Source: Octopus sinensis
Lineage: Eukaryota
Direction of reading: 5' to 3'
Length of the DNA: 64,000 nucleotides
Assembly (NCBI RefSeq): GCF_006345805.1
Contig: NW_021832223.1
Span: forward strand, 248,001 to 312,000
Positions within the stretch are counted from its first letter, which is position 1. Each line of letters begins with the position of its first letter. Position numbers and translations under genes: made by a program. The notes under the pieces were generated by a model that had not been told where the DNA came from, searched no databases, and saw only the letters and a program-made list of their open reading frames with translations. Below, in pieces: positions 2,437 to 51,785 of this stretch.

Positions 2437-4141
2437 ATGGGCGATTGGCGTAACTATGATTCATCTCAGCAAGGGAACTCCAACCAGAGATACCCCAATC
2501 AAGGATATCCCCCACAGCAGGGATATCCTCCTCAACAACAAGGATACCCAAACCAAGGATACCCGCAACAGCAGGGATATCCTCCTCAACAACAAGGATA
2601 TCCAAATCAAGGATATCCCAATCAAGGATATCCGCCACAGCAGGGATATCAACAACAAGGATACCCAAATCAAAACTACCCTCCGCAAAGTGGTACAAAT
2701 TACCATCAAGGATTCCCAAATTGCCCCACCGAACAATATAATTCATCTCAAATCGGATTTGCTCAGAATCCACAATTTCCACACAATCAACCACAATTCA
2801 CACAACCTCAGAATTATATGGGATTTGAGGCAAACCAGCCTCTCCAAACCTCCCAATACCAACAACAGCCTCCAACCGCTCCCACTTTTCAACAACAGTG
2901 GGGAACTCCACCTCAGCAGAACATCCAAGGTCGTTTATTGTCAATTATTTCAGGTCAGGCATCGAGACCGTCCATCTTTCCCTGCAGATCTTTCTCTGCG
3001 GAATCAGACGCGAACAGTCTCCGGAAGGCCATGAAGGGATTGGGTATTGTATTAATTGGATGGATAGGCACTACCGAGTCGGTGATTATCGAGATCACGG
3101 GAAACAGAAACAATGCTCAACGTCTCCTAATTCGAGAGGCTTTCCGCAAAATCCATGGACGGGTATTTATGGTTTTGACACCTCAAAGGACTTGCTTAAA
3201 GATCTTGAAGGAGAACTGTCTCGTAGTTTCAAACATCTGGTGGTTAATTGCTACAGATCTCCGGTGGAATTTGACGTGGAGAGCATCAACTGGGCTATAA
3301 AAGTGAGAGAATCGTGTCATTGAAGGGGGCAGGGACCAACGAGGAAATGCTCAATTTGATAATGGTGAGTCGGTCGGCCATCGAATTGCGAGAACTTAAA
3401 AATTTGTATCAAAAAAGTATGAAACATGCAAAAGTGGTAGGATTTAACAGATCGATCGAATCTGACATAAGCAATGACACACTCGGCCACTACACTCGAT
3501 TACTCCTAGAACTGGCCAAGGTGTGCTTGTTTGTTGACGGATTAAGGGCAACCGAGATTGTTCTACCTCAGTGGACATGGATATGGCCCAGGCTGACGCA
3601 AATGAGCTTTATTCTGCCGGGGTTGGACGTTGGGGCACCAACGAGCGTGTTTTCCATCAGATTTTTGCTTCGAGGAGTTTTGTACAATTAAGACAGACCT
3701 TTAAAGAGTATGCCAGGGTTACATTCCTCATTTAGTGGATATTTATAGATGGCGGGTCACTCGATTAACCAAGCTATCAGCAGGGAAATGTCTGGGGATG
3801 TCAAGAACTTGTACGAAGCACTGGGTAATGCATTTGCGTCACATTTACGCATTTTATTAATCAAATCTATTTTTTAGTCGACTACATTATCGACCCGATT
3901 ACTTTCTTTGCTCATTATTTGAACAAATCTGTGAAAGGGCTGGGCACTAATGACCATTTGCTGTGCTATATTATCATTTCCAGATCTGAGGTTTGGGGTT
4001 TAAAGAATGGCGTAGATCGATTTAGGGGATATTTCAGACGTCTTTTTGAATCGCTACAGAGTTCCTTTGGCTCGGTCTGTGAAGCAAGACACTTCCGGAG
4101 ATTATAAGAAACTCCTACTGTTGCTATTGGGAGGACAATAA
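2437..4141 (+). CDS. Annexin A7/A11-like, with GYP(P/Q)Q-rich N-terminus; multi-exon
   Basis: Annexin repeats (LRKAMKGLG|[37 protein letters not shown]) join after removing 23-31 nt introns (e.g. 3044-3067, 3417-3440) and one ~53-nt intron. Confidence 0.92.
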
Positions 4142-10479: not shown

Positions 10480-11910
10480 ATTCCCCCGCATGCCTGTCTC
10501 TCATCCTGCCCCCATTGCCGTCCCCTGTGCAGATCCTGCAACGTGGTTAACAAAAGATAGAGGGGTCGATCTTGTTATTCCTGTTCTCTGTTTTTTCTCC
10601 TTCCCTCGTCGCACTTAGGAACGTATTCCATCGTGGGTGTGTCCCTTTAGTCTCTCTGGTACCTCCTTATTTTTATCCCCTCATTTTCCACTACGATCCC
10701 TGGCGTTTGCCACTCCCTGGATTCTTTCCCGTTCTCTGAGTCTATTTCTGGGACCCATTCTATCCCTTTCGTTCTCAAATCCACCAAACTTTTTCGCTGT
10801 CTCCGGGAAATTTTGTGAAGAATCCCTGAAGCTGCTCGTATCGCAAAGCTGCTTGTCCACTGCAATTGATGATGCTTTAGTTCCATCCAGAGTCTGTAAC
10901 AAAACTTCTTCCTCCTCGCTTGTTACGATCGTCAAACAAGAATTGGCCTCGTACGACGAATGCTATTTTTATCTTTGCTAGTTTCATGCTTATTTCGCCA
11001 ATTCAGAGACTCCCTCTGATCCAACCTCCCATAAAGCGCCTCCTGCCGCGAATGATGACAACTACCTCTACAGAAAGATAAACAGCAAATTTATGGACGG
11101 CGATATTCGTGAAGCTGTCAGGCTTGTTGCCTCGACGAGTTCCATTTTGTACCAAACACCAGTCGTCTTGAATTCTGTCAGGGAGAAACATCCCTCTCAG
11201 CCCCAGAACTTCAGACCTCAGCCTTCTCCTCCACACTCGCTTTCAATCCGTTTGTGGTCTCGGAAGATTTCGCACTGAAACCCCTGACGAACTTTTCCCT
11301 AGGAAGCAATGGTGGAGTAGATGGCTTGAGACTCGGTCATCTAAAAGACTTGACTTCTCTCATCACTGCTGAAGCTGGACGGAGATTACTACATTTCTGT
11401 GCAACCTGATTTTGCACGCAGAATCTTCTTTTCTGCTAACCTTACTGCCCTCGGGAAAAAGGACAACGACGTGGGAAATATTTTCCGGAGGCTCTCTGCT
11501 AAGCTTTTGTGTCATGCCATTGTCCCCTACTTGTCCTCGGAGTTTCTACCTGTCAAATTAGGTGTTGATTTTCAAAATGACTGCAAAGCGGCTGTTCAAT
11601 CAATTCGTGAATTAATGGAATCGTCCGAGGAGTTAATCATGGTTAAACTCGACGTTTCGAGGGCTTTCAATTCCATCAGACGTGATCACCTGTAGGAGTG
11701 CTGCCGCGAACTAGTTCCTTTTCCATATCCTCTTGTGCATCTCTCATATGCTTCCCAAGCATCCTTATGTTCGACGAAGTTCATATCTCTTTGTCCACGG
11801 GGTTCAGCAGGGTGATTCTTTGGGCCCTGTTCTTTTTGCTCTGGGAGTTAATAGTATCGCCCAATCTGCCCAATCCTCTATTAACATTTGGTACCTGGAT
11901 GCTGCCTTCA
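10480..11910 (+). mobile_element. CRE-like non-LTR retrotransposon, N-terminal/RT region, degenerate
   Basis: DGDIREAVRL, GGVDGLRLGHLKDL, NLTALGKKD..GNIFRRLSAK, KLDVSRAFNSIRRD, GVQQGDSLGPVLFALG, WYLD. Confidence 0.8.
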
Positions 11911-12404
11911 ATTCACTGCAGATTTTTTGGTTTTCTTTTTCTGTCGCATCATGAGAAATTTTTTCAAATTCCAATAAAACATTTTCAAAAATTCTCAAAT
12001 TGACCATAAATTTTAAATATTTTTATATAATTTGCAAATTAATAAAATTTCAGTTATTTTATGTCTTCGAACAATTCTCGTGGTATTATACTCGTCTCAC
12101 TTTTTATCAAAAAATACAGATTTTAACTTTTAAAAATCAAAATGAAGATGTTCATGTCAGTATTTGGCTGATAGATTTTCCCATTTGTTTAAAAAGAAGA
12201 TTTCCAGAAAACAATTAATAATATTATTTGAAAAAAGATTTTTTTCTCAAAGTGTGTAAAAACAAAGGTACTTTTGTCGAAGTGGTCGCAGTTTTTTTAG
12301 AAGATAATTAAAATTAATTAATTTTTTTAGTGAAAAATAGATTATTAATTTATAACCTCTATCATAATTTAAATGGTTATTAAATTATTTAAAAATTTAT
12401 TTAA

Positions 12405-12812
12405 CCATTTAGTCATTTTTAGTACGCGGCATCAAATTTCAGGACTGTAGAAGGATTATGTCTTTTACAATCTTGCAAAACATTCCTTATAGTTCTGTAT
12501 TTGTTTTCGCCCAATAAATTGAAATAATAACTAAAAAAAACCTCGAATAAGATCCCAGATGATGTCTACAGCTCCTCTTTGAGCTTTATTCTTGCATTTT
12601 GCACATTTAGTCATTTTTAGTACGCGGCATCCAAATTCCAGGACTGTAGAAGGAATTTATGTCTTTTACAATCTGTGCAAAAGATTCCTTATAGTTCTGT
12701 ATTTGTTTTCGCCACATAAATTCTGAAAAAATAACTAACTAAAAAACCTGCGAAATAAGATCCCAGATGATGTCTTACAGCTCCTCTTTGAGCTTTATTC
12801 TTGCATTTTGCA
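12405..12812. repeat. About 200-bp tandem duplication of the Merlin transposase 3' end
   Basis: ATTTAGTCATTTTTAGTACGCGGCATC...TTTTGCAC occurs twice; the left copy differs mainly by single-base deletions. Confidence 0.85.
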
Positions 12813-13658
12813 CTTCCCCACATTCGTTCTACTGTCTGGGTGTGCACTCCCGTCGTTGGATCCACAAAGAATTTTCTGAATATATTATATTTCCTTACTT
12901 ATGGTTAACGGTTTCGTGTGTGTAGCCGTTTTCAACCAATTGATCAGTTGAATACCCTAAATGTTAATCAAATAATGCTAACCTTTCCAGCAGTCACTAT
13001 AAATAATGCTTCCCACCTCGACATATCGAATTACTAGACTGAGCAGTGTTTCTCTGCTCCTATCCGCGACTGGTTGCAGAAACACTGTTTGGTGGCTCGA
13101 CAAATACCACCGAAGACCCACTGTTTTGGTAAAACTCTTCCAGAGTTTTTTTCCGTTTGGAAAACATACTCTCGTCTACCTCCACAATCATACCAGGACC
13201 ACCTGAAATAAACATTAATAATACCAATTTTGCCGTCAGATCTTTTAACAAGTGCGTCCACACAGACTTCACGTAAAAACATAGCCCAATCGACATATGT
13301 ATGTTCACCCCAATTGTATTCGTGATGAAGCCATTTGAAGGTATGCCTATCGTAACTCCATAAGTATATGTAGGCGATGACATCCTCAAATGGCAATCTA
13401 CAATTCTCTAACCAGGTATCTAGAATTATTTGAGAGAATTATACCTTTTTTAATAGAACATTGGACTCTACAACCAACTCTTGAGCATTTCCAATTGAGC
13501 TTCGGTCCCAAGACTAATTCCATCTGATGTCCCTTCGGACATATACGTGATTTTGAAAGGATATCCACATTTTGCAGAAAATGCACTGCATCCTCCTCCT
13601 TACTTATTGGGAGCTGTCGGAATTTGATGTTGCATAAGTCCACAACAGAATTTTCCAT
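12607..13658 (-). CDS. Merlin transposase, six exons, about 310 aa after correcting two 1-nt homopolymer deletions
   Basis: Introns 13420-13444, 13203-13224, 12957-12982, 12876-12898 and 12723-12747 restore KIG|GPGMIVEVDES, SDCWK|GY, VNHK|KFFVDPTTGVHTQTVERMW and SYFAE|FMWRK. Confidence 0.85.
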
Positions 13659-13862
13659 GTGACCTATAGTGCCAGTTTATATCAATATTAGGTACATGCT
13701 CGCCATAATATTAAAAAAATTAGAAAATAAATTAGTAAAAAATTTAATAATATTTTAAATTATTGATAGAGCCACTTAAAAAAATATAATATATTCCACC
13801 TCAAAAATTATTAGATTTTTTAAAAGGCCTAAAAAAACTGCGACCACTTCGACAAAAGTACC

Positions 13863-14958
13863 AAAACAAAATCTATCTTCAAAAAATGCGCATAGACTTA
13901 AGTTCCCACAGCTTGATGCTACGTTAGTTGAATGGATGGATTCGATTGAGTCTAAAGGTAATTTGTACTAATTTATGATTAAGGTGGCTTTCTAATGATG
14001 CTTTAATTTCAATAAGGCTAATTTATTCGCAGCTGAATTAAAACTGGATAATTTTAAAAACTCAAATGGATACCTTCATAATTCAAAAAAAGAGACATGG
14101 TTTTCGAATGACCAAGTTACATGGAGAAATGAGAACTAATGATCCAGTAGATGTCGACTTATTTATCGAAAAATTCATAGAAATATCAAAGAGTTATAAT
14201 GCCGATCAAATTTATAACTTGGACGAAACGGGATTGTATTACAAGCTGATTCCTTCGAAGAGTATTTGTAGAAACAGATTTCAAGGATATAAAAATTTCA
14301 AAGATCGTGTTTCTATTATGCTATGTTCAAATATGAGTGGAAGTCATAAATTGAAACCTGTGATGATCTCGAAACCTAAAATGCCAAGATGTTTTAAATC
14401 TTATGACTATAAATGTTTCATTGATTATTATAGCTCAAAACGAGCTTGGATGACAGGAACAATTTTTACTAACTGGCTATTAAACTTTGATTACCATCTC
14501 AAAAATGAAAAAAAGCAAATTTTACTTCTCATGGACAATTGTCCTTCACATTGTGTTCCATCAAATTTGGATAACATAAAAATATTGTTTTTTCCTCCAA
14601 ATAGTACTGGTCTTATTCAACCTATGGATTTGGGTATAATAAAAACATTTAAAACACATTTCAAAATTGAAAACGACCTCCTAAAAAACATTGAGAACGA
14701 ACATTAAGTTCAATTGATTACATCCATAAGGCGCTATAAGGAAAATGTCATTAAAACTCAAAAAAAGCAGATGGGCATCCAATTCTACTTTAAGAACATT
14801 AATAATGCTTAATTACTTAAAATTTTCTGGATAAAAGTTGTTCTTATTCAAAATTTAATTTACACAAAAGATTGATTTTATTTCTCAAATTGGCCATTTC
14901 TCGAATTGACCACAAAAACACGTGGAACCAAAAATGGCCAATTTCAGAGGAGTCACTG
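13863..14958 (+). mobile_element. pogo/Tigger-like transposon (CENP-B HTH plus DDE_1), interrupted at the 5' end by Merlin
   Basis: KFPQLDATLVEW..ESKG|G with 26-nt intron 13958-13983; YNLDETGLYY, LLMDNCPSH, IQPMDLGIIK; ends ...GAGGAGTCACTG|TA. Confidence 0.85.
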
Positions 14959-15049: not shown

Positions 15050-16200
15050 GCTATTTGCAAGGCTGGCCGAGCGTCTAGTGAGGCCATTAACTAATTTTTA
15101 ATTTTCTTTCTTTGCTTTTTATATGTTCTATTTTAATAAATTTGATGACATGTTCAATATACCGGGCTTCTCTCTACACCGGATAATTTTGTCGGTTCCT
15201 AAAGGAATCGAATTAAATTGGTATGACTTTACTTGGATTAGAATTTATCCAGCATTGAAAAGGATGGCCCTTGATTGTATTCGAGATGACATCCCAATGT
15301 CTGTGTATCAACATGCGTTTAGAGAAAATTATTCAACTTCAATTTACCTGACAACGTTTTCTTAATTTATTTCTGAAGCATTCAACGCCCAGAAACCTCA
15401 CTTAAAGACTGTTCTTGTTTCCCTGAATATTACAAAAGCATTTGATTCAGTTTAAAGAAGGTCCCTAACAAAGAAAATTTTTGATTTGAACATTCACTCC
15501 AATCTAAAGAGAAGGCTTGCTAACTGCCTAAGCGGAAGACGCGAACAGGGCATCGACAACAACGTGAAATTGAAGATACGCCTCCTACCGAATGGAGTCC
15601 CTCAGGGCTCCCTTCTATCTTCCACATTATTCAACTTATATGTACACGAGAGTGAACTAACGACAACTGTCTTCTCCTTTCTTTAAGAAAACGCATCCAA
15701 ACGGATACAAGGAATATTTAATTCATTAACTGTTTGGCTTAAACAACTACTATGGAAGAATCGCCCACAAAGTTTTTGGTAAACTTATTCACCTCTTGCA
15801 AATAACATTCGAGAAGATCTTTAATCATAATTAACAAAAAGACAATACCTTTTACGGCCACGCCAACGATCATTGAAGTGACCTTGGATCAAGTACTCAA
15901 ATTCGCAAAACATTTCGAAAACCGGGTCACGCTCATGAAAACGAGAATCCTGAAGTTGATCTCAAAACCCATTGGCAGGAACGCGCAAGACTCTATCAAC
16001 TGTATATACCAATTCATACAACTAACTTTAACCTACGCAAGAGAATCGTGGTCGATGGCCATCTCACGCTCCCCCCTAATGAAATTATCCACAATATATG
16101 AAGCCGCCAAAATATTGATTGGCCTGAATCTTTTATCAAACACCCTGGAAACAGTTCTCATCAAAAAGCAAGAAAAAATAGGACTTTTCTTTTTTTCTTT
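15050..16200 (+). mobile_element. Degenerate LINE reverse transcriptase
   Basis: PNGVPQGSLLSSTLFNLYV and downstream DQVLKFAKH..LTYARESW; similar to 50355-51785. Confidence 0.7.
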
Positions 16201-16366: not shown

Positions 16367-19300
16367 TTAAGAACGATTTCTGTAAATAGAAGACCGTTCG
16401 TGTCGACAGAAAGATTTAAGTACTCCAAAAATGACTGTTATGACCATAATACCATAGAATGCAGCAATGGAAATGTAGGCCAGTTTAATGAAATGAGAAT
16501 GTGTGAAGATTGATTTTTCGACAATTGTTTTACCATTCTGAGGGTGAGTCAAAGTTGTATCAGAAGTTACAACTAAATCAGCATCAAAGTTTGAATTGTT
16601 GGCACCAATAGTAGAAGTGGTAACACCAATTTTTGAAGAATCAGCATCAATGTTTGAATTGTTGGAACCAATAGTAGAAGTGGTAACACGAATTTTTGAA
16701 GAATCAGCATCAATGTTTGAATTGTTGGAACCAATAGTAGAAGTGGTAACACGAATTTTTGAAGAATCAGCATCAATGTTTGAATTGTTGGCACCAATAG
16801 TAGAAGTGGTAACACGAATTTTTGAAGAATCAGCATCAATGTTTGAATTGTTGGCACCAATAGTAGAAGTGGTAACACGAATTTTTGAAGAATCAGCATC
16901 AATGTTTGAATTGTTGGAACCAATAGTAGAAGTGGTAACACGAATTTTTGAAGAATCAGCATCAATGTTTGAATTGTTGGCACCAATAGTAGAAGTGGTA
17001 ACACGAATTTTTGAAGAATCAGCATCAATGTTTGAATTGTTGGAACCAATAGTAGAAGTGGTAACACGAATTTTTGAAGAATCAGCATCAATGTTTGAAT
17101 TGTTGGAACCAATAGTAGAACTGGTAACACGAATTTTTGAAGAATCAGCATCAATGTTTGAATTGTTGGAACCAATAGTAGAAGTGGTAACACGAATTTT
17201 TGAAGAATCAGCATCAATGTTTGAATTGTCGGAACCAATAGTAGAAGTGGTAACACGAATTTTTGAAGAATCAGCATCAATGTTTGAATTGTTGACACCA
17301 ATAGTAGAAGTGGTAACACCAATTTTTGAAGAATCAGCATCAATGTTTGAATTGTTGTCACCAATAGTAGAAGTGGTAAAACCAATTTTTGAAGAATCAG
17401 CATCAATGTTTGTATTGTTAGCAACAATAGTAGAAGTGGTAAGACGTATTTTTGAAAAATCAGTATCAATGTTTGAATAGTTGGGACCAATAGTAGAAGA
17501 TGTAAAACGAATTTTTGAAGAACCAGCATCAATGTTTGAATTGTTGGCACTAATAGTAGAAGTGGTAACACCAATTTTTGAAGAATCAGCATCAATGTTT
17601 GAATTATTGGCACCAATAGTAGAAGTGTCTACAACAATTTTTGAAGAATCAGCATCAATGTTTGGATTGTTGTCACCAAAAGTAGAAGTGGTTACAACAA
17701 TTTTTGAAGAATCAACATCAATGTTTGTATTGTTGGCACCAATAGTAGAAGTGGTAAAACGAATTTTTGAAGAACCAGCATCAATGTTTGAATTGTTGAC
17801 ACCAATAGTAGAAGTGGTAACACCAATTTTTGAAGAATCAGCATCAATGTTTGAATTGTTGGCATTAATAGTAGAAGTGGTAACATCAATATTTGAAGAA
17901 TCAGCATCAATGTTTGAATTGTTGACACCAATAGTAGAAGTGGTAACACCAATTTTTGAAGAATCAGCATCAATGTTTGAATTATTGGCACCAATAGTAG
18001 AAGTGTCTACAACAATTTTTGAAGAATCAGCATCAATGTTTGAATTGTTGTCACCAATAGTAGAAGTGGTAACACCAATTTTTGAAGAATCAGCATCAAT
18101 GTTTGAATTGATGACACCAATAGTAGAAGTGGTAACACCAATTTTTGAAGAATCAGCATCAATGTTTGAATTGTTGTCACCAATACTAGAAGTGGTAAAA
18201 CGAATTTTTGAAGAATCAGCATCAATGTTTGAATTGTTGAAACCAATAGTAGAAGTGGTAAAACGAATTTTTGAAGAATCAGCATCAATGTTAGAATTGT
18301 TGGCATTAATAGTAGAAGTGGTAACACCAATTTTTGAAGAATCAGAATCAATGTTTGAATTGTTAACACCAATAGTAGAAGTGGTAACACCAATTTTTGA
18401 AGAATCAGCATCAATGTTTGAATTATTGGCACCAATAGTAGAAGTGTCTACAACAATTTTTGAAGAATCAGCATCAATGTTTGAATTGTTGTCACCAATA
18501 GTAGAAGTGGTAACACCAATTTTTGAAGAATCAGCATCAATGTTTGAATTGTTGACACCAATAGTAGAAGTAGTAACACCAATTTTTGAAGAATCAGAAT
18601 CAATGTTTGAATTGTTAACACCAATAGTAGAAGTGGTAACACCAATTATTGAAGAATCAGCATCAATGTTTGAATTATTGGCACCAATAGTAGAAGTGTC
18701 TACAACAATTTTTGAAGAATCAGCATCAATGTTTGAATTGTTGTCACCAATAGTAGAAGTGGTAACACCAATTTTTGAAGAATCAGCATCAATGTTTGAA
18801 TTGTTGACACCAATAGTAGAAGTAGTAACACCAATTTTTGAAGAATCAGCATCAATGTTGAATTGTTGTCACCAATAGTAGAAGTGGTAACACCAATTTT
18901 TGAAGAATCAGCATCAATGTTTGAATTGTTGACACCAATAGTAGAAGTAGTAACACCAATTTTTGAAGAATCAGCATCAATGTTTGAATTGTTGTCACCA
19001 ATAGTAGAAGTGGTAACACCAATTATTGAAGAATCAGCATCAATGTTTGAATTGTTGGCACCAATAGTAGAAGTGGTTACAACTATTTTTGAAGAATCAG
19101 CATCAATGTTTGAATTGTTGTCACCAATAGTAGAAGTGGTAACACCAATTTTTGAAGAATCAGCATCAATGTTTGAATTGTTGACACCAATAGTAGAAGT
19201 GGTAACACCAATTTTTGAAGAATCAGCATCAATGTTTGAATTGTTGTCACCAATAGTAGAAGTGGTAACACCAATTTTTGAAGAATCAGCATCAATGTTT

Positions 19301-22300
19301 GAATTGTTGTCACCAATAATAGAAGTGGTAACACCAATTTTTGAAGAATCAGCATCAATGTTTGAATAGTTGGCACCAATAGTAGAAGATGTAAAACGAA
19401 TTTTTGAAGAACCAGCATCAATGTTTGAATTGTTGGCACTAATAGTAGAAGTGGTAACACCAATTTTTGAAGAATCAGCATCAATGTTTGAATTATTGGC
19501 ACCAATAGTAGAAGTGTCTACAACAATTTTTGAAGAATCAGCATCAATGTTTGAATTGTTGTCACCAAAAGTAGAAGTGGTTACAACAATTTTTGAAGAA
19601 TCAACATCAATGTTTGTATTGTTGGCACCAATAGTAGAAGTGGTAAAACGAATTTTTGAAGAACCAGCATCAATGTTTGAATTGTTGGCACCAATAGTAG
19701 AAGTGGTAACACCAATTTTTGAAGAATCAGCATCAATGTTTGAATTGTTGGCTTTAATAGTAGAAGTGGTAACATCAATATTTGAAGAATCAGCATCAAT
19801 GTTTGAATTGTTGGCACCAATAGTGGAAGTGGTAACACCAATTTTTGAAGAATCAGCATCAATGTTTGAATTGTTGGAACCAATAGTAGAAGTGGCAACA
19901 CCAATTTTTGAAGAATCAGCATCAATGTTTGAATTGTTGGCATTAATAGTAGAAGTGGTAACATCAATATTTGAAGAATCAGTATCAATGTTTGAATTGT
20001 TGGCACCAATAGTAGAAATGGTAACACCAATTTTTGAAGAATCAGCATCAATGTTTGAATTGTTGGAACCAATAGTAGAAGTGGTAACATCAATTTTTGA
20101 AGAATCAGCATCAATGTTTGAATTGTTGGTACCAATAGTAAAAGTGGTAACATCAATTTTTGAAGAATCAGCATCAATGTTTGAATTGTTGGTACCAATA
20201 GTAAAAGTGGTAACATCAATTTTTGAAGAATCAGCATCAATGTTTGAATTGTTGCCACCAATAGTAGAAGTGGTAACATCAATTTTTGAAGAATCAGCAT
20301 CAATGTTTGAATTGTTGGCACCAATAGTGGAAGTGGTAACACCAATTTTTGAAGAATCAGCATCAATGTTTGAATTGTTGGAACCAATAGTAGAAGTGGT
20401 AACATCAATTTTTGAAGAATCAGCATCAATGTTTGAATTGTTGGCACCAATAGTAGAAGTGGTAACATCAATTTTTGAAGAATCAGCATCAATGTTTGAA
20501 TTGTTGGCACCAATAGTAGAAGTGGTAACATCAATTTTTGAAGAATCAGCATCAACGTTTGAATTGTTGGAAGCAAAAGTAGAAGTGGTAACGCCAATTT
20601 TTGAAGAATCAGCATTAATGTTTGAATTGTTGGCACCAATAGTAGAAGTGGTAACCTCAATTTTAGAAGAATCAGCATCAATGTTTGAATTGTTGGCACC
20701 AATAGTAGAAGTAGTAGCACGAATTTTTGAAGAATCAGCATCAATGTTTGAATTGTTCGCACCAATATTAGAAGTGGTTACAATAATTTTGTAAGAATCA
20801 GCATCAATGTTTGTATTGTTGGCACCAATAGTAGAATTGGTAAAAGTAATTTTTGAAGAATCAGCATCAATGTTTGTATTTTTGGCACCAATAGTAGAAG
20901 TGGTAAAACTAATTTTTGAAGAATCAGCATCAATGTTTGAATTGTTGGCACCAATAGTTGAAGTGGTTACAACAATTTTTGAAGAAACAGCATCAATTTT
21001 TGAATAGTTGACACCAATAGTAGAAGTGGTAAAACGAATTTTTGAAGAATCAGCATCAATGTTTGAATTGTTGTCACCAATAGTAGAAGTGGTGAAACGA
21101 ATTTTTGAAGAATCGGCTTCAATGTTTGAATTGTTGGCACCAATAGTAGAAGTGGTTACAACAATTTTTGAAGAATCAGTATCAATGTTTGTATTGTTGG
21201 CACCAATTGTAGAAGTGGTAAAACGTATTTTTGAAGAATCAGCATCAATGTTTGAATTGTTGGCACCAATAGTAGAAGTGTTAAAACGTATTTTTGAAGA
21301 ATCAGTATCAATGTTTGAATTGTTGGAACCAATAGTAGAAGTGGTAACATGAGTGCTTGAAGAATTAACACGAATTTTGGAAGGAATTTGGGTTGTTGGC
21401 ATGTTTTGTGTGGTGATTTCCTTTTTCTTTTCTTTATTTACGTGAACAAGGCAGTGAATATTTTTAAAAAGATGTTGAGGGCCAGAATCAGTGGCTCTAA
21501 CTTGTATGAGATAGTATGCGGGTTTGAGTTGTCCTCTCGCATATATATTTCCGTTGTTGTCAATCAAAAATAAACTTTTGTGGTCGTTTGGTGTTTTGCA
21601 GGAATTCAATTCTTCACTCATGTCAATCGCCGAATCAATGCTGTAGCCTATTTTTCCATTCAGTTCGGAGTCTTCGTCAATGGCAAAAACAGTCGTCAAA
21701 TATTGACTCTTTTCCTTTTTCAAAACAGTTTTGGCATAGCAGCCGTGGCCAGCAAATTCTGGGGAATTGTCGTTCACGTCGACAATATAAAATGTAGCTG
21801 TATAATCAATGTTTGGTACTACTTCATTAATGATATACACATCGTATTGTTTTTGTTTTTCATAATCCGCTGATAATTTAATCGTGACATCTTTTGCTTG
21901 AGTATCGAAAATATTTTCCACACCTTTAGAAGGCATGACTTTATAAGGAAACGTGAACGGCAAATAAATCTCATGTTCTGGAAGGTTTTCACAGACCTTG
22001 GAAAATTGTTGGGTCCTGGCGGTGTAGAAATTGACGTTCTATCAAATAATTTTCCGGACACTACCTTTAGTGTTAAACTAGATCTGACTTGGTTTGGATA
22101 CCATCTTTCAAAACAGGAATCTGTTTCCACTGCAATGCAGGTCACGTTTGAAAATGCCATTGGAATGCTGACATTATAGTCCAGTAAGATCACGTCATAA
22201 ATATAATTCGACGTGGGAACAAGGACGATCTCATCCGTGTTCAGGGTACACTTCACGACGATAGACGTGTCAGACGTTTGTACTCTTATCGTATTGAAGT

Positions 22301-45178: not shown

Positions 45179-46100
45179 ATGTATAAATACTATTTCCATA
45201 GTGAAGGTGGTCATGGCACGTCTGCTTGAGGAGAACCCCTACAGTAACACCAAGACTGGACTACTGGGAGACCAGCGGGACACAATGTTGATCAATGAAG
45301 TTCTCAGAAAAGTGAAATAATCTCCACAATACGACTTAGGACAAAATGGGCTGCGGATTCGTTCGGGGTCATGCAATTCCCGAAGACTTTGTGTACGGAA
45401 TCCCTCCAATCAAGCAAAGATTCGGCGTCTCTGATGGTTTGGTAGGAATAGTGACTCTCAGCTATGCGCGGATGGCCAGACATTCAACTTGGTAAACAAA
45501 AAAGCAAATCAGCCCCCCGCGAGAGGGACTTTATAGCAATGAACACAGCGGCCACTCAGTCCGGGATTGTCACTGCCAAGGAAGTCAACAGTTTCTTCAA
45601 GATGCACGACATCCGAAAGAAGGTCCCCAAAAAATCCACGACAAAATCGAAATCCTTTGAGTCGATGGTGCACGGAGTGAAATCCCGGTGCCTTTTTTTG
45701 ATGTCATTTAGTCCGTCGACTCCGATAAGTTACGTGATCGAACACAAATACCAAACTGACTACATCAACGAAATGTACAACAAAAAACATGACAAAGACG
45801 GACTCCTCAAAAAAGTAATCCGTTCGATTTAAATTTAGAAACGTAGCCAAGACGAAGTATACATGACTAAGACCAGTCTTTCTCGCCATTTTGCGCCGCC
45901 GGAAGAGCCGAGGGAGTTGTGGCAAATGAGGCAATTCCGAGACAAGGTTCCCCAAGTCTCTCATTGAAAAGGCGACTCCCCACCTCGAAACTTTCCGAAA
46001 CACAGAATCGCGGGAGCGAGCATTCAAGAAATACCAGAACGAGAAAATAATAAACAGTGGACCTCTACAAATGGGCATTGGCAAACTCCCAACTCATTAA
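45179..46100 (+). CDS. CFAP77: Cilia- and flagella-associated protein 77
   Basis: Spliced LGDQRDTML..FVYGI..RDFIAMN..GIVTAKE..HDIR..R|PSTPISYVIEHKY..LWQMRQF..HLETF. Confidence 0.8.
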
Positions 46101-50354: not shown

Positions 50355-51785
50355 TGTCATTCATTTATTATTATTATTATTAGAACCAAGATCACCGTCC
50401 AAAACATAAAACTAATTAATCAGGTGATCCCGGCTTCTCTGAGGAGGGTCCTCAACTTTGCCCGGTGCTCCTCCCTTGTCCCGGCACAATTTCTGTGAGG
50501 GCGCGGTGGTGGTGTTTTAGGCCCTGTAGCCCCGAGGTTTCTTCTCAAGATTTCATTAAAGATTGGGGCGATGAGTAGATGTTCGTTCGGTCCCTGTAGT
50601 GCTTTTCGCAAGCGATCTTGAGTTTTCTCGATTTTAGCGCGGTTCTTTCCACTGATAAACCCTCCCCACGCCTCACAAGCATAGCTAAGGGAGGGTTCGA
50701 TGAATTGCCGGTATAAGGCTTGTCGTGCGGGGAAGCTGATACACTGTCTGCATTTACGAAGAAACACTTTCAAGATGTTCAGTTTCTTCATGCACCTCGT
50801 AGTAATATTATCGACTTGTTGAGAGAAACACATATGACTGTCGTAAGTCACCCCGAGGATTTTCTGAGATTTTTGAAACGGGATTTCCATGTTATTTAGG
50901 TACAGGTTCACCACCGTTTTCCCAAGCTTCCTTGCTGAGGTCATAAGCGTGGTGACCGATTTTTCCGGACTCGTTGATAGTCGGTTTAGCGAGAGCCAAC
51001 TTTCGAGATTGTTAAGGTGGTTCTGCAGTTTTGTACTCGCCGTGTTCACCTCACAGCTCCGGGTAGCAATTACGATATCGTCAGCGTATGATAAAATGAT
51101 TGAGTCTTTGTCGTTTGGTAGCGGTAGATCCGATAAGAATAAGTTGAACAGGGCTGGTGAAAGGGGGGAGCCTTGAGGGACCCCGTTTGGAAAGTATCGA
51201 GACATCGATCTTGTATTGTTTTGTGGATTCTGCCTCTTCGGCCGCTGAGGAAGTTAGCTAGCCACATTTTCAGTCTTGGGTGAATTCCACTAAGGTATAT
51301 TTTCCTGGTCAGTATTTTTCTGGGAACGAGTCAAAAGCCTTATGGATATCCACTGAGCACATAACCGTTTTTTGGTTATACGGTTTGGTAGATAGTCCAT
51401 CTGAGATGAAGTTCGTCAAAGTGACAAGGTGCGAGGTGGTTGATTTACCACATTTAAATCCATGTTGAAAGTCCAAATCGGGGAGATATTGTTTGGTGTG
51501 GTGAGTATAAGTTTTTCCAGAACTTGGAAAGACGCAGAGGAGAGATATTGGCCTGTAGGACGCCGGGTTGTCTTTTGGTCTCCCTGGTTTCAGAATAGGG
51601 CGAATGTGTGCCATTTTCCATATTGTGGGTATTGCGTTGTTGTTTATAGAAAAGTTGTAAATTTGACAGAGAGCTGATATTGCCACCGGTCCTAGGTTTT
51701 TCATCAGGATAGTAGGAATTCCGTCAGGTCCACAAGAGCCAGTGCTTCTTAAATTTCTGATGGTCTGAGACACCTCCTCTGTCAT
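50355..51785 (-). mobile_element. 5'-truncated LINE (RT, I/Jockey-group-like) with (TAA)n tail
   Basis: YRPISLLC, VDIHKAFDS, GVPQGSPLSPALFNLFL, YADDI; frameshifts; tail near 50365-50380. Confidence 0.9.

Follow-up and report, generated by a model that had tools for sequence, protein, structure and literature searches.

Merlin is a superfamily of DNA transposons, reportedly described by Feschotte in 2004. Its members carry terminal inverted repeats (TIRs) of 24-462 bp that start with 5'-GG, are flanked by a target-site duplication (TSD) of 8 or 9 bp and encode a transposase whose D, D and E residues lie in three blocks, with ~50-70 amino acids (aa) between blocks 1 and 2 (PMC8101967). Genes of transposon origin have a precedent as material for the study of intron gain (PMC3369469), and introns of less than 30 bp are described among animals only in dicyemids and myxobolid myxozoans (PMC13644364). 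Here, we describe a Merlin element in a 64-kb stretch of the Octopus sinensis assembly (contig NW_021832223.1, positions 248,001 to 312,000 of the forward strand; this whole stretch is hereafter the window, and all coordinates count from its first letter) whose transposase gene is divided by five putative introns of 22-26 nt. The gene structure of this Merlin has converged on the extreme intron architecture of its host.

The element occupies 12267-13862 (1,596 bp) and contains a single transposase gene on the minus strand. Its limits are marked by the following features:

12259-12266, no strand: left copy of the TSD, AAAACAAA, the same as 13863-13870
12267-12300, plus strand: TIR at the 3' end of the gene, 34 nt, reads 5'-GGTACTTTTGTCGAAGTGGTCGCAGTTTTTTTAG, 100% complementary to 13829-13862
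12267-12402, no strand: left arm of a longer, imperfect inverted repeat in the subterminal region (76% identical in blastn to 13725-13862 reversed, over 140 nt)
13829-13862, minus strand: TIR at the 5' end of the gene, 34 nt, perfect complement of the other end
13863-13870, no strand: right copy of the TSD, AAAACAAA, the same as 12259-12266

The outer 34 nt of the TIR are perfect and open with GGTAC, which provides the 5'-GG start. Because the two ends show inverted similarity over ~136-140 nt (76%, blastn), the true TIR is long and imperfect, with a perfect outer portion. A 25-nt TIR probe, allowed up to three mismatches, matched the two element ends in the window and nothing else, where 0 matches were expected by chance; other copies, miniature inverted-repeat transposable elements and an empty paralogous site were also looked for in the window and none was found. 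Since TIRs and TSD are intact, the insertion appears to be recent. An earlier reading of this DNA, made from its letters (hereafter the sequence-only reading), had missed the imperfect extension of the TIR to ~136 nt, as well as the nesting of the element in a pogo-like transposon and the 3' duplicate of its gene, both of which are described below.

Taking five GT..AG segments out of the gene leaves a coding sequence (CDS) of 931 nt, which opens with the ATG at 13658 and closes with the TAA at 12607-12609:

13445-13658, minus strand: exon 1, with the ATG at 13656-13658 and the N-terminal conserved C..H...C...C motif
13420-13444, minus strand: intron 1, 25 nt, GTATAA...TCTAG; junction SIKK/DTWLEN colinear with homologues
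13225-13419, minus strand: exon 2
13203-13224, minus strand: intron 2, 22 nt, GTATTA...TTCAG; junction GKIG/GPGMIV colinear with homologues
12983-13202, minus strand: exon 3, with D146 (codon 13174-13176), D208 (codon 12993-12995) and both frameshift sites
12957-12982, minus strand: intron 3, 26 nt, GTTAGC...TTTAG; junction DCWKG/YSTDQ colinear with homologues
12899-12956, minus strand: exon 4
12876-12898, minus strand: intron 4, 23 nt, GTAAGG...TTCAG; junction VNHK/KFFVDP colinear with homologues
12748-12875, minus strand: exon 5, with the catalytic E247 (codon 12827-12829) in TVERMWG
12723-12747, minus strand: intron 5, 25 nt, GTTTTT...TTCAG; junction SYFA/EFMWR colinear with homologues
12607-12722, minus strand: exon 6, with the TAA stop at 12607-12609 and a C-terminus that lies a few residues from the ends of the homologues

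The frame of this CDS shifts twice, and two +1 corrections give a conceptual protein of 311 aa. Each of the five intron segments occurs a single time within the element. An additional 5' intron (a 32-nt GT..AG candidate) reached from an upstream ATG at 13706 was considered; it leads into a stop, and the start was set at 13658.

The 311-aa protein matches the Pfam family DDE_Tnp_IS1595 (PF12762) over residues 151-278 (E=2.3e-17; 63.8 bits, with a cut-off of 27). A database search with it found 194 homologues, the best of which are ~290 aa long and ~50% identical over 90-95% of the query; those named come from spiders, a scorpion, an aphid, an oyster, a sea urchin and others, and PF12762 was present in nearly all of the 120 homologues listed out of the 194. 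The protein contains IVEVDESMF, IYSDCWKG and TVERMWG, and in an alignment with 15 homologues (16 sequences) the residues D146, D208 and E247 are invariant, with 62 aa from D to D, and the alignment is gap-free at all five intron junctions. Upstream of the catalytic domain, residues ~40-63 show the pattern C-x3-H ... W-x-C ... C, in which C40, W56, C58 and C63 are nearly invariant across the animal homologues. Pfam reported no domain over this Cys/His region, which may be a candidate zinc-binding module for DNA recognition. These data bear out most of what the sequence-only reading had described: perfect 34-bp TIRs, an exact 8-bp TSD, five GT-AG introns of 25, 22, 26, 23 and 25 nt (here placed on the minus strand), Merlin motifs and a D-D-E triad restored by intron removal, and a complete Merlin-type element, for which we found every defining feature that could be tested. 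Judged by its sequence, the element adds a new member to the Merlin superfamily, with a predicted IS1595-like DDE transposase and an autonomous-type structure. As a separate observation, the metagenomic homologue P0005 carries 13 additional in-frame aa precisely where intron 2 lies in our element (KIG/GPG), a candidate retained intron.

Are the five segments introns of the kind found in the host's own genes? The host set was taken from Pfam-checked models of two genes in the window, annexin and CFAP77. The annexin gene (2437-4141) has nine introns (24, 24, 26, 23, 24, 26, 31, 53 and 25 nt), the removal of which gives a protein of 482 aa with four annexin repeats (257 bits, Pfam); CFAP77 (45213-45832, plus strand) has introns of 28, 25 and 24 nt, and its spliced product of 180 aa matches positions 1-154 of the 157-position Pfam profile with 113 bits. 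The 12 verified host introns measure 23-53 nt with a median of 25 nt, at a density of 6.2 per kb of CDS in annexin and 5.5 in CFAP77. The five Merlin introns measure 22-26 nt, also with a median of 25 nt, at 5.4 per kb of CDS. Each of the five includes stop codons and has a length not divisible by 3; their content of G and C (GC) is 21.5%, compared with 40.9% in the exons. Outside GT and AG their splice sites show scant consensus, and the same weak consensus has been reported for Dicyema japonicum (PMC13644364). A scan of the whole window for GT..AG segments that bridge long open reading frames (ORFs) was too noisy and gave no length peak.

That a dead transposase pseudogene simply collected five small random insertions is an explanation to which its other lesions, namely two frameshifts and a 3' duplicate, lend some colour. 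We consider it extremely improbable: all five segments begin with GT and end with AG (at this base composition, five random insertions would all do so with a chance of ~6e-13), all fall within 22-26 nt, which is the modal size of host introns, all are far richer in A and T than the exons, and the gene contains no similar insertion that lacks GT..AG ends. The evidence supports the view that the five segments behave as spliceosomal micro-introns that are host-like in size and density, and we infer that they are spliced from the transcript.

Short introns also affect how other genes of the window have been modeled. For CFAP77, a fewest-introns model with three introns of 43-53 nt, found by script, was rejected because it scored 73 bits against 113 for the micro-intron model. 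The CFAP77 model in the database (158 aa) is mis-spliced, and the model with three micro-introns is a far better full-length match to Pfam. Generic gene callers seem to fail on the micro-introns of such contigs.

The identity of the host is itself part of the argument. An ORF in the window that encodes an OCRL-like protein was found exactly on contig VCDQ01005863.1 (522,133 bp) of GCA_006345805.1, the O. sinensis assembly of Li et al. 2020, and the nearest database relative of this protein is only ~30% identical. The window has a GC content of 38.7% and is rich in transposons. None of the three standard stops interrupts its ORFs of 482-1112 aa, which indicates the standard genetic code; on these grounds, and with the verified genes ending in TAA, we rejected a ciliate host with a reassigned code. 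D. japonicum, a dicyemid that inhabits the renal sac of O. sinensis, has a genome with 36.7% GC and 48.9% repeats, and its 6.2 introns per gene over a mean CDS of 1,155 bp (PMC6736024) work out to 5.4 introns per kb. The median intron of Dicyema sp. is 27 bp (PMC6543705). Together with annexin and CFAP77, these published figures sustain the proposal of the sequence-only reading that the element has adopted the intron size and density of its host.

Since the standard code, the micro-introns, the GC content and the repeat load all fit a dicyemid, the window is probably contaminant DNA. All the traits by which a dicyemid would be recognized (standard code, median intron of ~25-27 nt, ~37% GC, about half repeats and association with an octopus) were found here, and from this profile we think it very probable that the contig is dicyemid DNA that was co-assembled with that of the octopus. 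The sequence-only reading had not recognized the host as a dicyemid contaminant. We found no paper reporting contamination of contig VCDQ01005863.1 by dicyemid DNA and, in the literature searched, no report of a Merlin family from a dicyemid-type host.

How the gene came by its introns can be approached through its relatives. Five of six homologous genes (scorpion P0008, oyster P0057, sea urchin P0074, spider P0020 and metagenomic P0005) are uninterrupted ORFs, which agrees with the earlier statement that Merlin is usually intron-poor. The sixth, P0106 from the nematode Mesorhabditis spiculigera (GCA_958295435.1, L005:501-1593), takes 1,093 nt to encode 311 aa and, as a predicted gene model, is interrupted at least three times by GT-AG introns of 38-45 nt, which follow residues 73, 156 and 246. 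None of them lies at any of the five positions in our element, so that the comparison of intron positions suggested by the sequence-only reading yields five intronless Merlins and one with non-matching introns. An intron-bearing Merlin is thus not unique to the window, if the nematode model is taken as a precedent, and because the introns of P0106 lie at other positions, Merlin genes can apparently gain short introns independently in different hosts. From this comparison, the introns of the element appear to have been gained after its lineage split from intronless relatives.

Where and when this happened is a narrower question, on which we hold only tentative views. One scenario, which we regard as rather doubtful in this specific form, is that an intronless Merlin invaded the dicyemid lineage and that all five introns were born there de novo. 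If so, dicyemids would have or have had a process that generates introns and is strong enough to raise any gene in their genome to ~5 per kb, copies of the family, with their zero-intron ancestor, would record individual births of micro-introns in an animal, and the splicing efficiency of minimal introns might also limit the amount of transposase. Another is that the introns were inherited from an intron-bearing Merlin lineage, possibly acquired horizontally, and then shrank to host size through a deletion bias. The introns of P0106 show that Merlins elsewhere carry introns, the closest relatives of our transposase are only ~50% identical and leave a long unsampled branch, and the 3' duplicate described below decayed by deletions only, which fits such a bias. 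We consider inheritance unlikely all the same, as none of the P0106 introns (after residues 73, 156 and 246) matches any of the five positions and the genes of the other five homologues are intronless.

Altogether, we favor a model in which this Merlin copy resides in a dicyemid genome and its micro-introns were inserted into an intronless ORF and are removed by ordinary splicing; as a whole, we judge this account likely. In this model, the DDE transposase would bind the GG-initiated TIRs, excise the element and reinsert it with an 8-bp duplication. The five micro-introns would be insertions relative to an ancestral intronless Merlin ORF, and the gene would be read after five constitutive splicing events carried out by the ordinary spliceosome of the host. 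Because transposition proceeds via DNA, introns would travel with the element, and those gained by a master copy would pass to all of its descendants. Several points weigh against this account. The introns bear no introner-like or tandem-duplication signature and resemble neither one another nor other window sites nor the exons that flank them. One copy of the element is known, a second having been found neither in the window nor in one overlapping locus, and a protein nearly identical to the transposase is absent from the protein database searched. The dicyemid identity of the host rests on a circumstantial match of genome traits. Finally, the 931 nt of Merlin CDS contain two frameshifts and ~3.8 kb of verified host CDS contain none (OCRL-like, 1,824 nt; annexin, 1,449 nt; CFAP77, 543 nt), from which the copy is probably already a pseudogene or non-autonomous, unless the frameshifts are long-read errors.

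The lesions therefore deserve a closer look, and they include a feature that was overlooked when the two frameshifts were described as the only ones:

12405-12602, minus strand: degenerate tandem repeat of the 3' end of the gene (the distal copy), 198 bp, located after the stop, with a decayed intron 5 that has no acceptor

The sequence-only reading had assigned the frameshifts to two 1-nt deletions in homopolymer runs. This holds for the first, which lies in an A7 run at 13146-13152; the second, at ~13078-13082, lies at a run of only three T (TTT). We set aside programmed -1 frameshifting at the A7 run, a device of some bacterial insertion sequences: the second shift is at a non-slippery site and the homologues read straight through. 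In a global alignment, the distal duplicate differs from the proximal sequence (12603-12811, 209 bp) by 11 deleted bases, in one- or two-base deletions, and by 6 mismatches, with 0 insertions. This excess of deletions over insertions reflects either a strong bias toward deletion, which would agree with the shrinkage of introns in this genome, or an artefact of an unpolished assembly. If the duplicate is real, its copy of intron 5 means that the duplication came after that intron, and the 84 nt of TIR and TSD, which are unchanged, mean that it is much older than the insertion. In that case the family would have carried its introns for a long time, a conclusion that falls if the duplicate is an assembly artefact.

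Deletions are the typical residual error of long-read consensus sequence, and the O. sinensis assembly was reportedly built from PacBio reads. It is accordingly conceivable that the copy is intact and its family active now, with the frameshifts, and perhaps the 3' duplicate, being assembly or polishing errors in repeated, low-coverage contaminant DNA. One frameshift lies inside the A7 run, the duplicate differs almost wholly by deletions (11 deleted and 0 inserted bases), the TIRs and TSD are flawless and repeated sequence is harder to polish. We treat this as a possibility to be kept in mind, if not the probable one: the ~3.8 kb of host CDS are free of frameshifts despite their homopolymer runs (11 runs of at least 5 bases in the OCRL-like gene alone), just three T make up the run at the second frameshift, and the adjoining pogo-like element also looks frameshifted, as expected of real transposon decay. 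As assembled, the copy cannot make full-length transposase because of its two frameshifts, and the suggestion that the element may be active finds no backing in this single copy. A frameshifted copy could still be mobilised in trans by an intact one. Host-like intron density might instead mark a domesticated gene, derived from Merlin, co-opted by the host and given a host gene structure, for which the Tc1-like TLEWI elements, which carry introns and look domesticated (10.1101/656579), offer a precedent. Our element retains perfect TIRs and a TSD, unlike TLEWI, lies inside another transposon in a transposon nest and has a frameshifted gene, and co-option of this kind is hardly credible here.

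In the P element of Drosophila, the third intron is removed germline-specifically. The sequence-only reading drew on this example to propose that transposition of the Merlin element is gated by splicing. In such a scheme, retention of a micro-intron would act like that of P-element IVS3, with a truncated DNA-binding repressor being made where splicing is incomplete and full splicing being confined to germ-line cells (e.g. axoblasts). The sequence permits this: all five introns contain stops and have lengths not divisible by 3, so that any of them, if retained, would cut the protein short, and with intron 1 retained the 71-aa N-terminal Cys/His region would be preserved. In addition, one paper reports that the very short introns of microsporidia are spliced inefficiently (PMC13644364). 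Against the proposal, the introns are ordinary for the host in their size and splice ends, ~5 introns per kb is the host norm, so that no special role is needed to explain them, and the copy is frameshifted. The sequence gives no sign that splicing is regulated instead of constitutive, and we consider a splicing gate very unlikely.

The surroundings of the element place it within an older transposon:

~11990-14950, plus strand: older decayed pogo/Tigger-like transposon that holds the Merlin insertion (approximate limits)

The ORF at 14042-14704 encodes the DDE_1 (pogo/Tigger) transposase domain. When the two flanks of Merlin are joined, a continuous helix-turn-helix (HTH)-like reading runs across the insertion point ('...NLSSKNAHRLKFPQLDATLVEWMDSIESKG' / '...KNAHRLKFPQLDATLVEWMDSIESKG') and the pogo-like frame is restored. 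From this reading, Merlin is seen to have landed in the HTH-coding part of the older element. The pogo-like element itself has several apparent 1-nt frameshifts and possible TIR-like ends near 11993 and 14930; it also has a possible 26-nt GT..AG intron at 13956-13981, after '...WMDSIESKG', the removal of which does not restore the frame cleanly.

Around the pogo-like element lie fragments of long interspersed nuclear element (LINE) reverse transcriptases. Reverse-transcriptase fragments of non-LTR (long terminal repeat) type occur at 11200-11920, 15400-15800 and 50423-51253, with the motifs 'GVQQGDSLGPVLFAL' and 'NGVPQGSLLSSTLFNLY' and a match to RVT_1, and they fit the LINE-rich dicyemid genome of the literature. 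Farther along, 16576-21349 (minus strand) is a tandem repeat of 63 bp with ~76 copies and 92% matches, in which each unit encodes 21 aa rich in Ser and Thr (…SSKIRFTTSTIGANNSNIDAD…). The repeat lies downstream of a cadherin-like domain, within ORFs of 833 and 1112 aa, and a strong positive GC skew extends over 16-22 kb. The region looks like a gene for a mucin-like surface protein; Pfam matches to 'HrpB7' within it were discarded as low-complexity artefacts. Rfam and tRNA scans of the window found nothing.

In animals, introns are seldom gained and the event is difficult to observe. That dicyemid genes keep intron positions while their introns have shrunk is stated in the title of Ogino et al. 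2010 (cited in PMC6543705). Merlin offers a clean starting state of zero introns, and a comparison among family members could reveal the timing and manner in which introns of 22-26 nt arise and the minimal signals that suffice for their splicing. In practical terms, an octopus reference assembly in wide use probably includes a 522-kb contig of parasite DNA. The transposition of this element would work as in any Merlin, and its mechanistic novelty is small.

How does this element compare with the systems already described? With the Merlin superfamily it shares a DDE_Tnp_IS1595 transposase of ~300 aa, GG TIRs, an 8-bp TSD and a single gene within ~1.6 kb; it differs in that five introns of 22-26 nt interrupt the gene, whereas most of the homologous genes examined are uninterrupted. 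The bacterial IS1595 family (IS1016/ISXO2 group) likewise combines a PF12762 catalytic domain with an 8-bp TSD and a single transposase gene. However, these elements are prokaryotic and intronless, their similarity to our transposase is limited to the catalytic half, and the element groups with animal Merlins. The nearest parallel in gene structure is P0106 of Mesorhabditis, also a Merlin-type transposase broken by several short GT-AG introns, although these are longer (38-45 nt), lie at other positions and are compared here as a gene model alone. With the P element of Drosophila, the likeness is that transposase production needs intron removal and that a retained intron would truncate the protein. 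The P element belongs to another superfamily, and regulated splicing has been demonstrated for it, whereas the introns in the window are indistinguishable from ordinary host introns. Finally, the TLEWI elements of pteriomorph bivalves show that the transposase of a Tc1-like DNA transposon, normally intronless, can acquire spliceosomal introns (10.1101/656579). TLEWI occur in few copies, have no TIRs and look domesticated; the Merlin element described here, in contrast, has perfect TIRs and a TSD and looks mobile.

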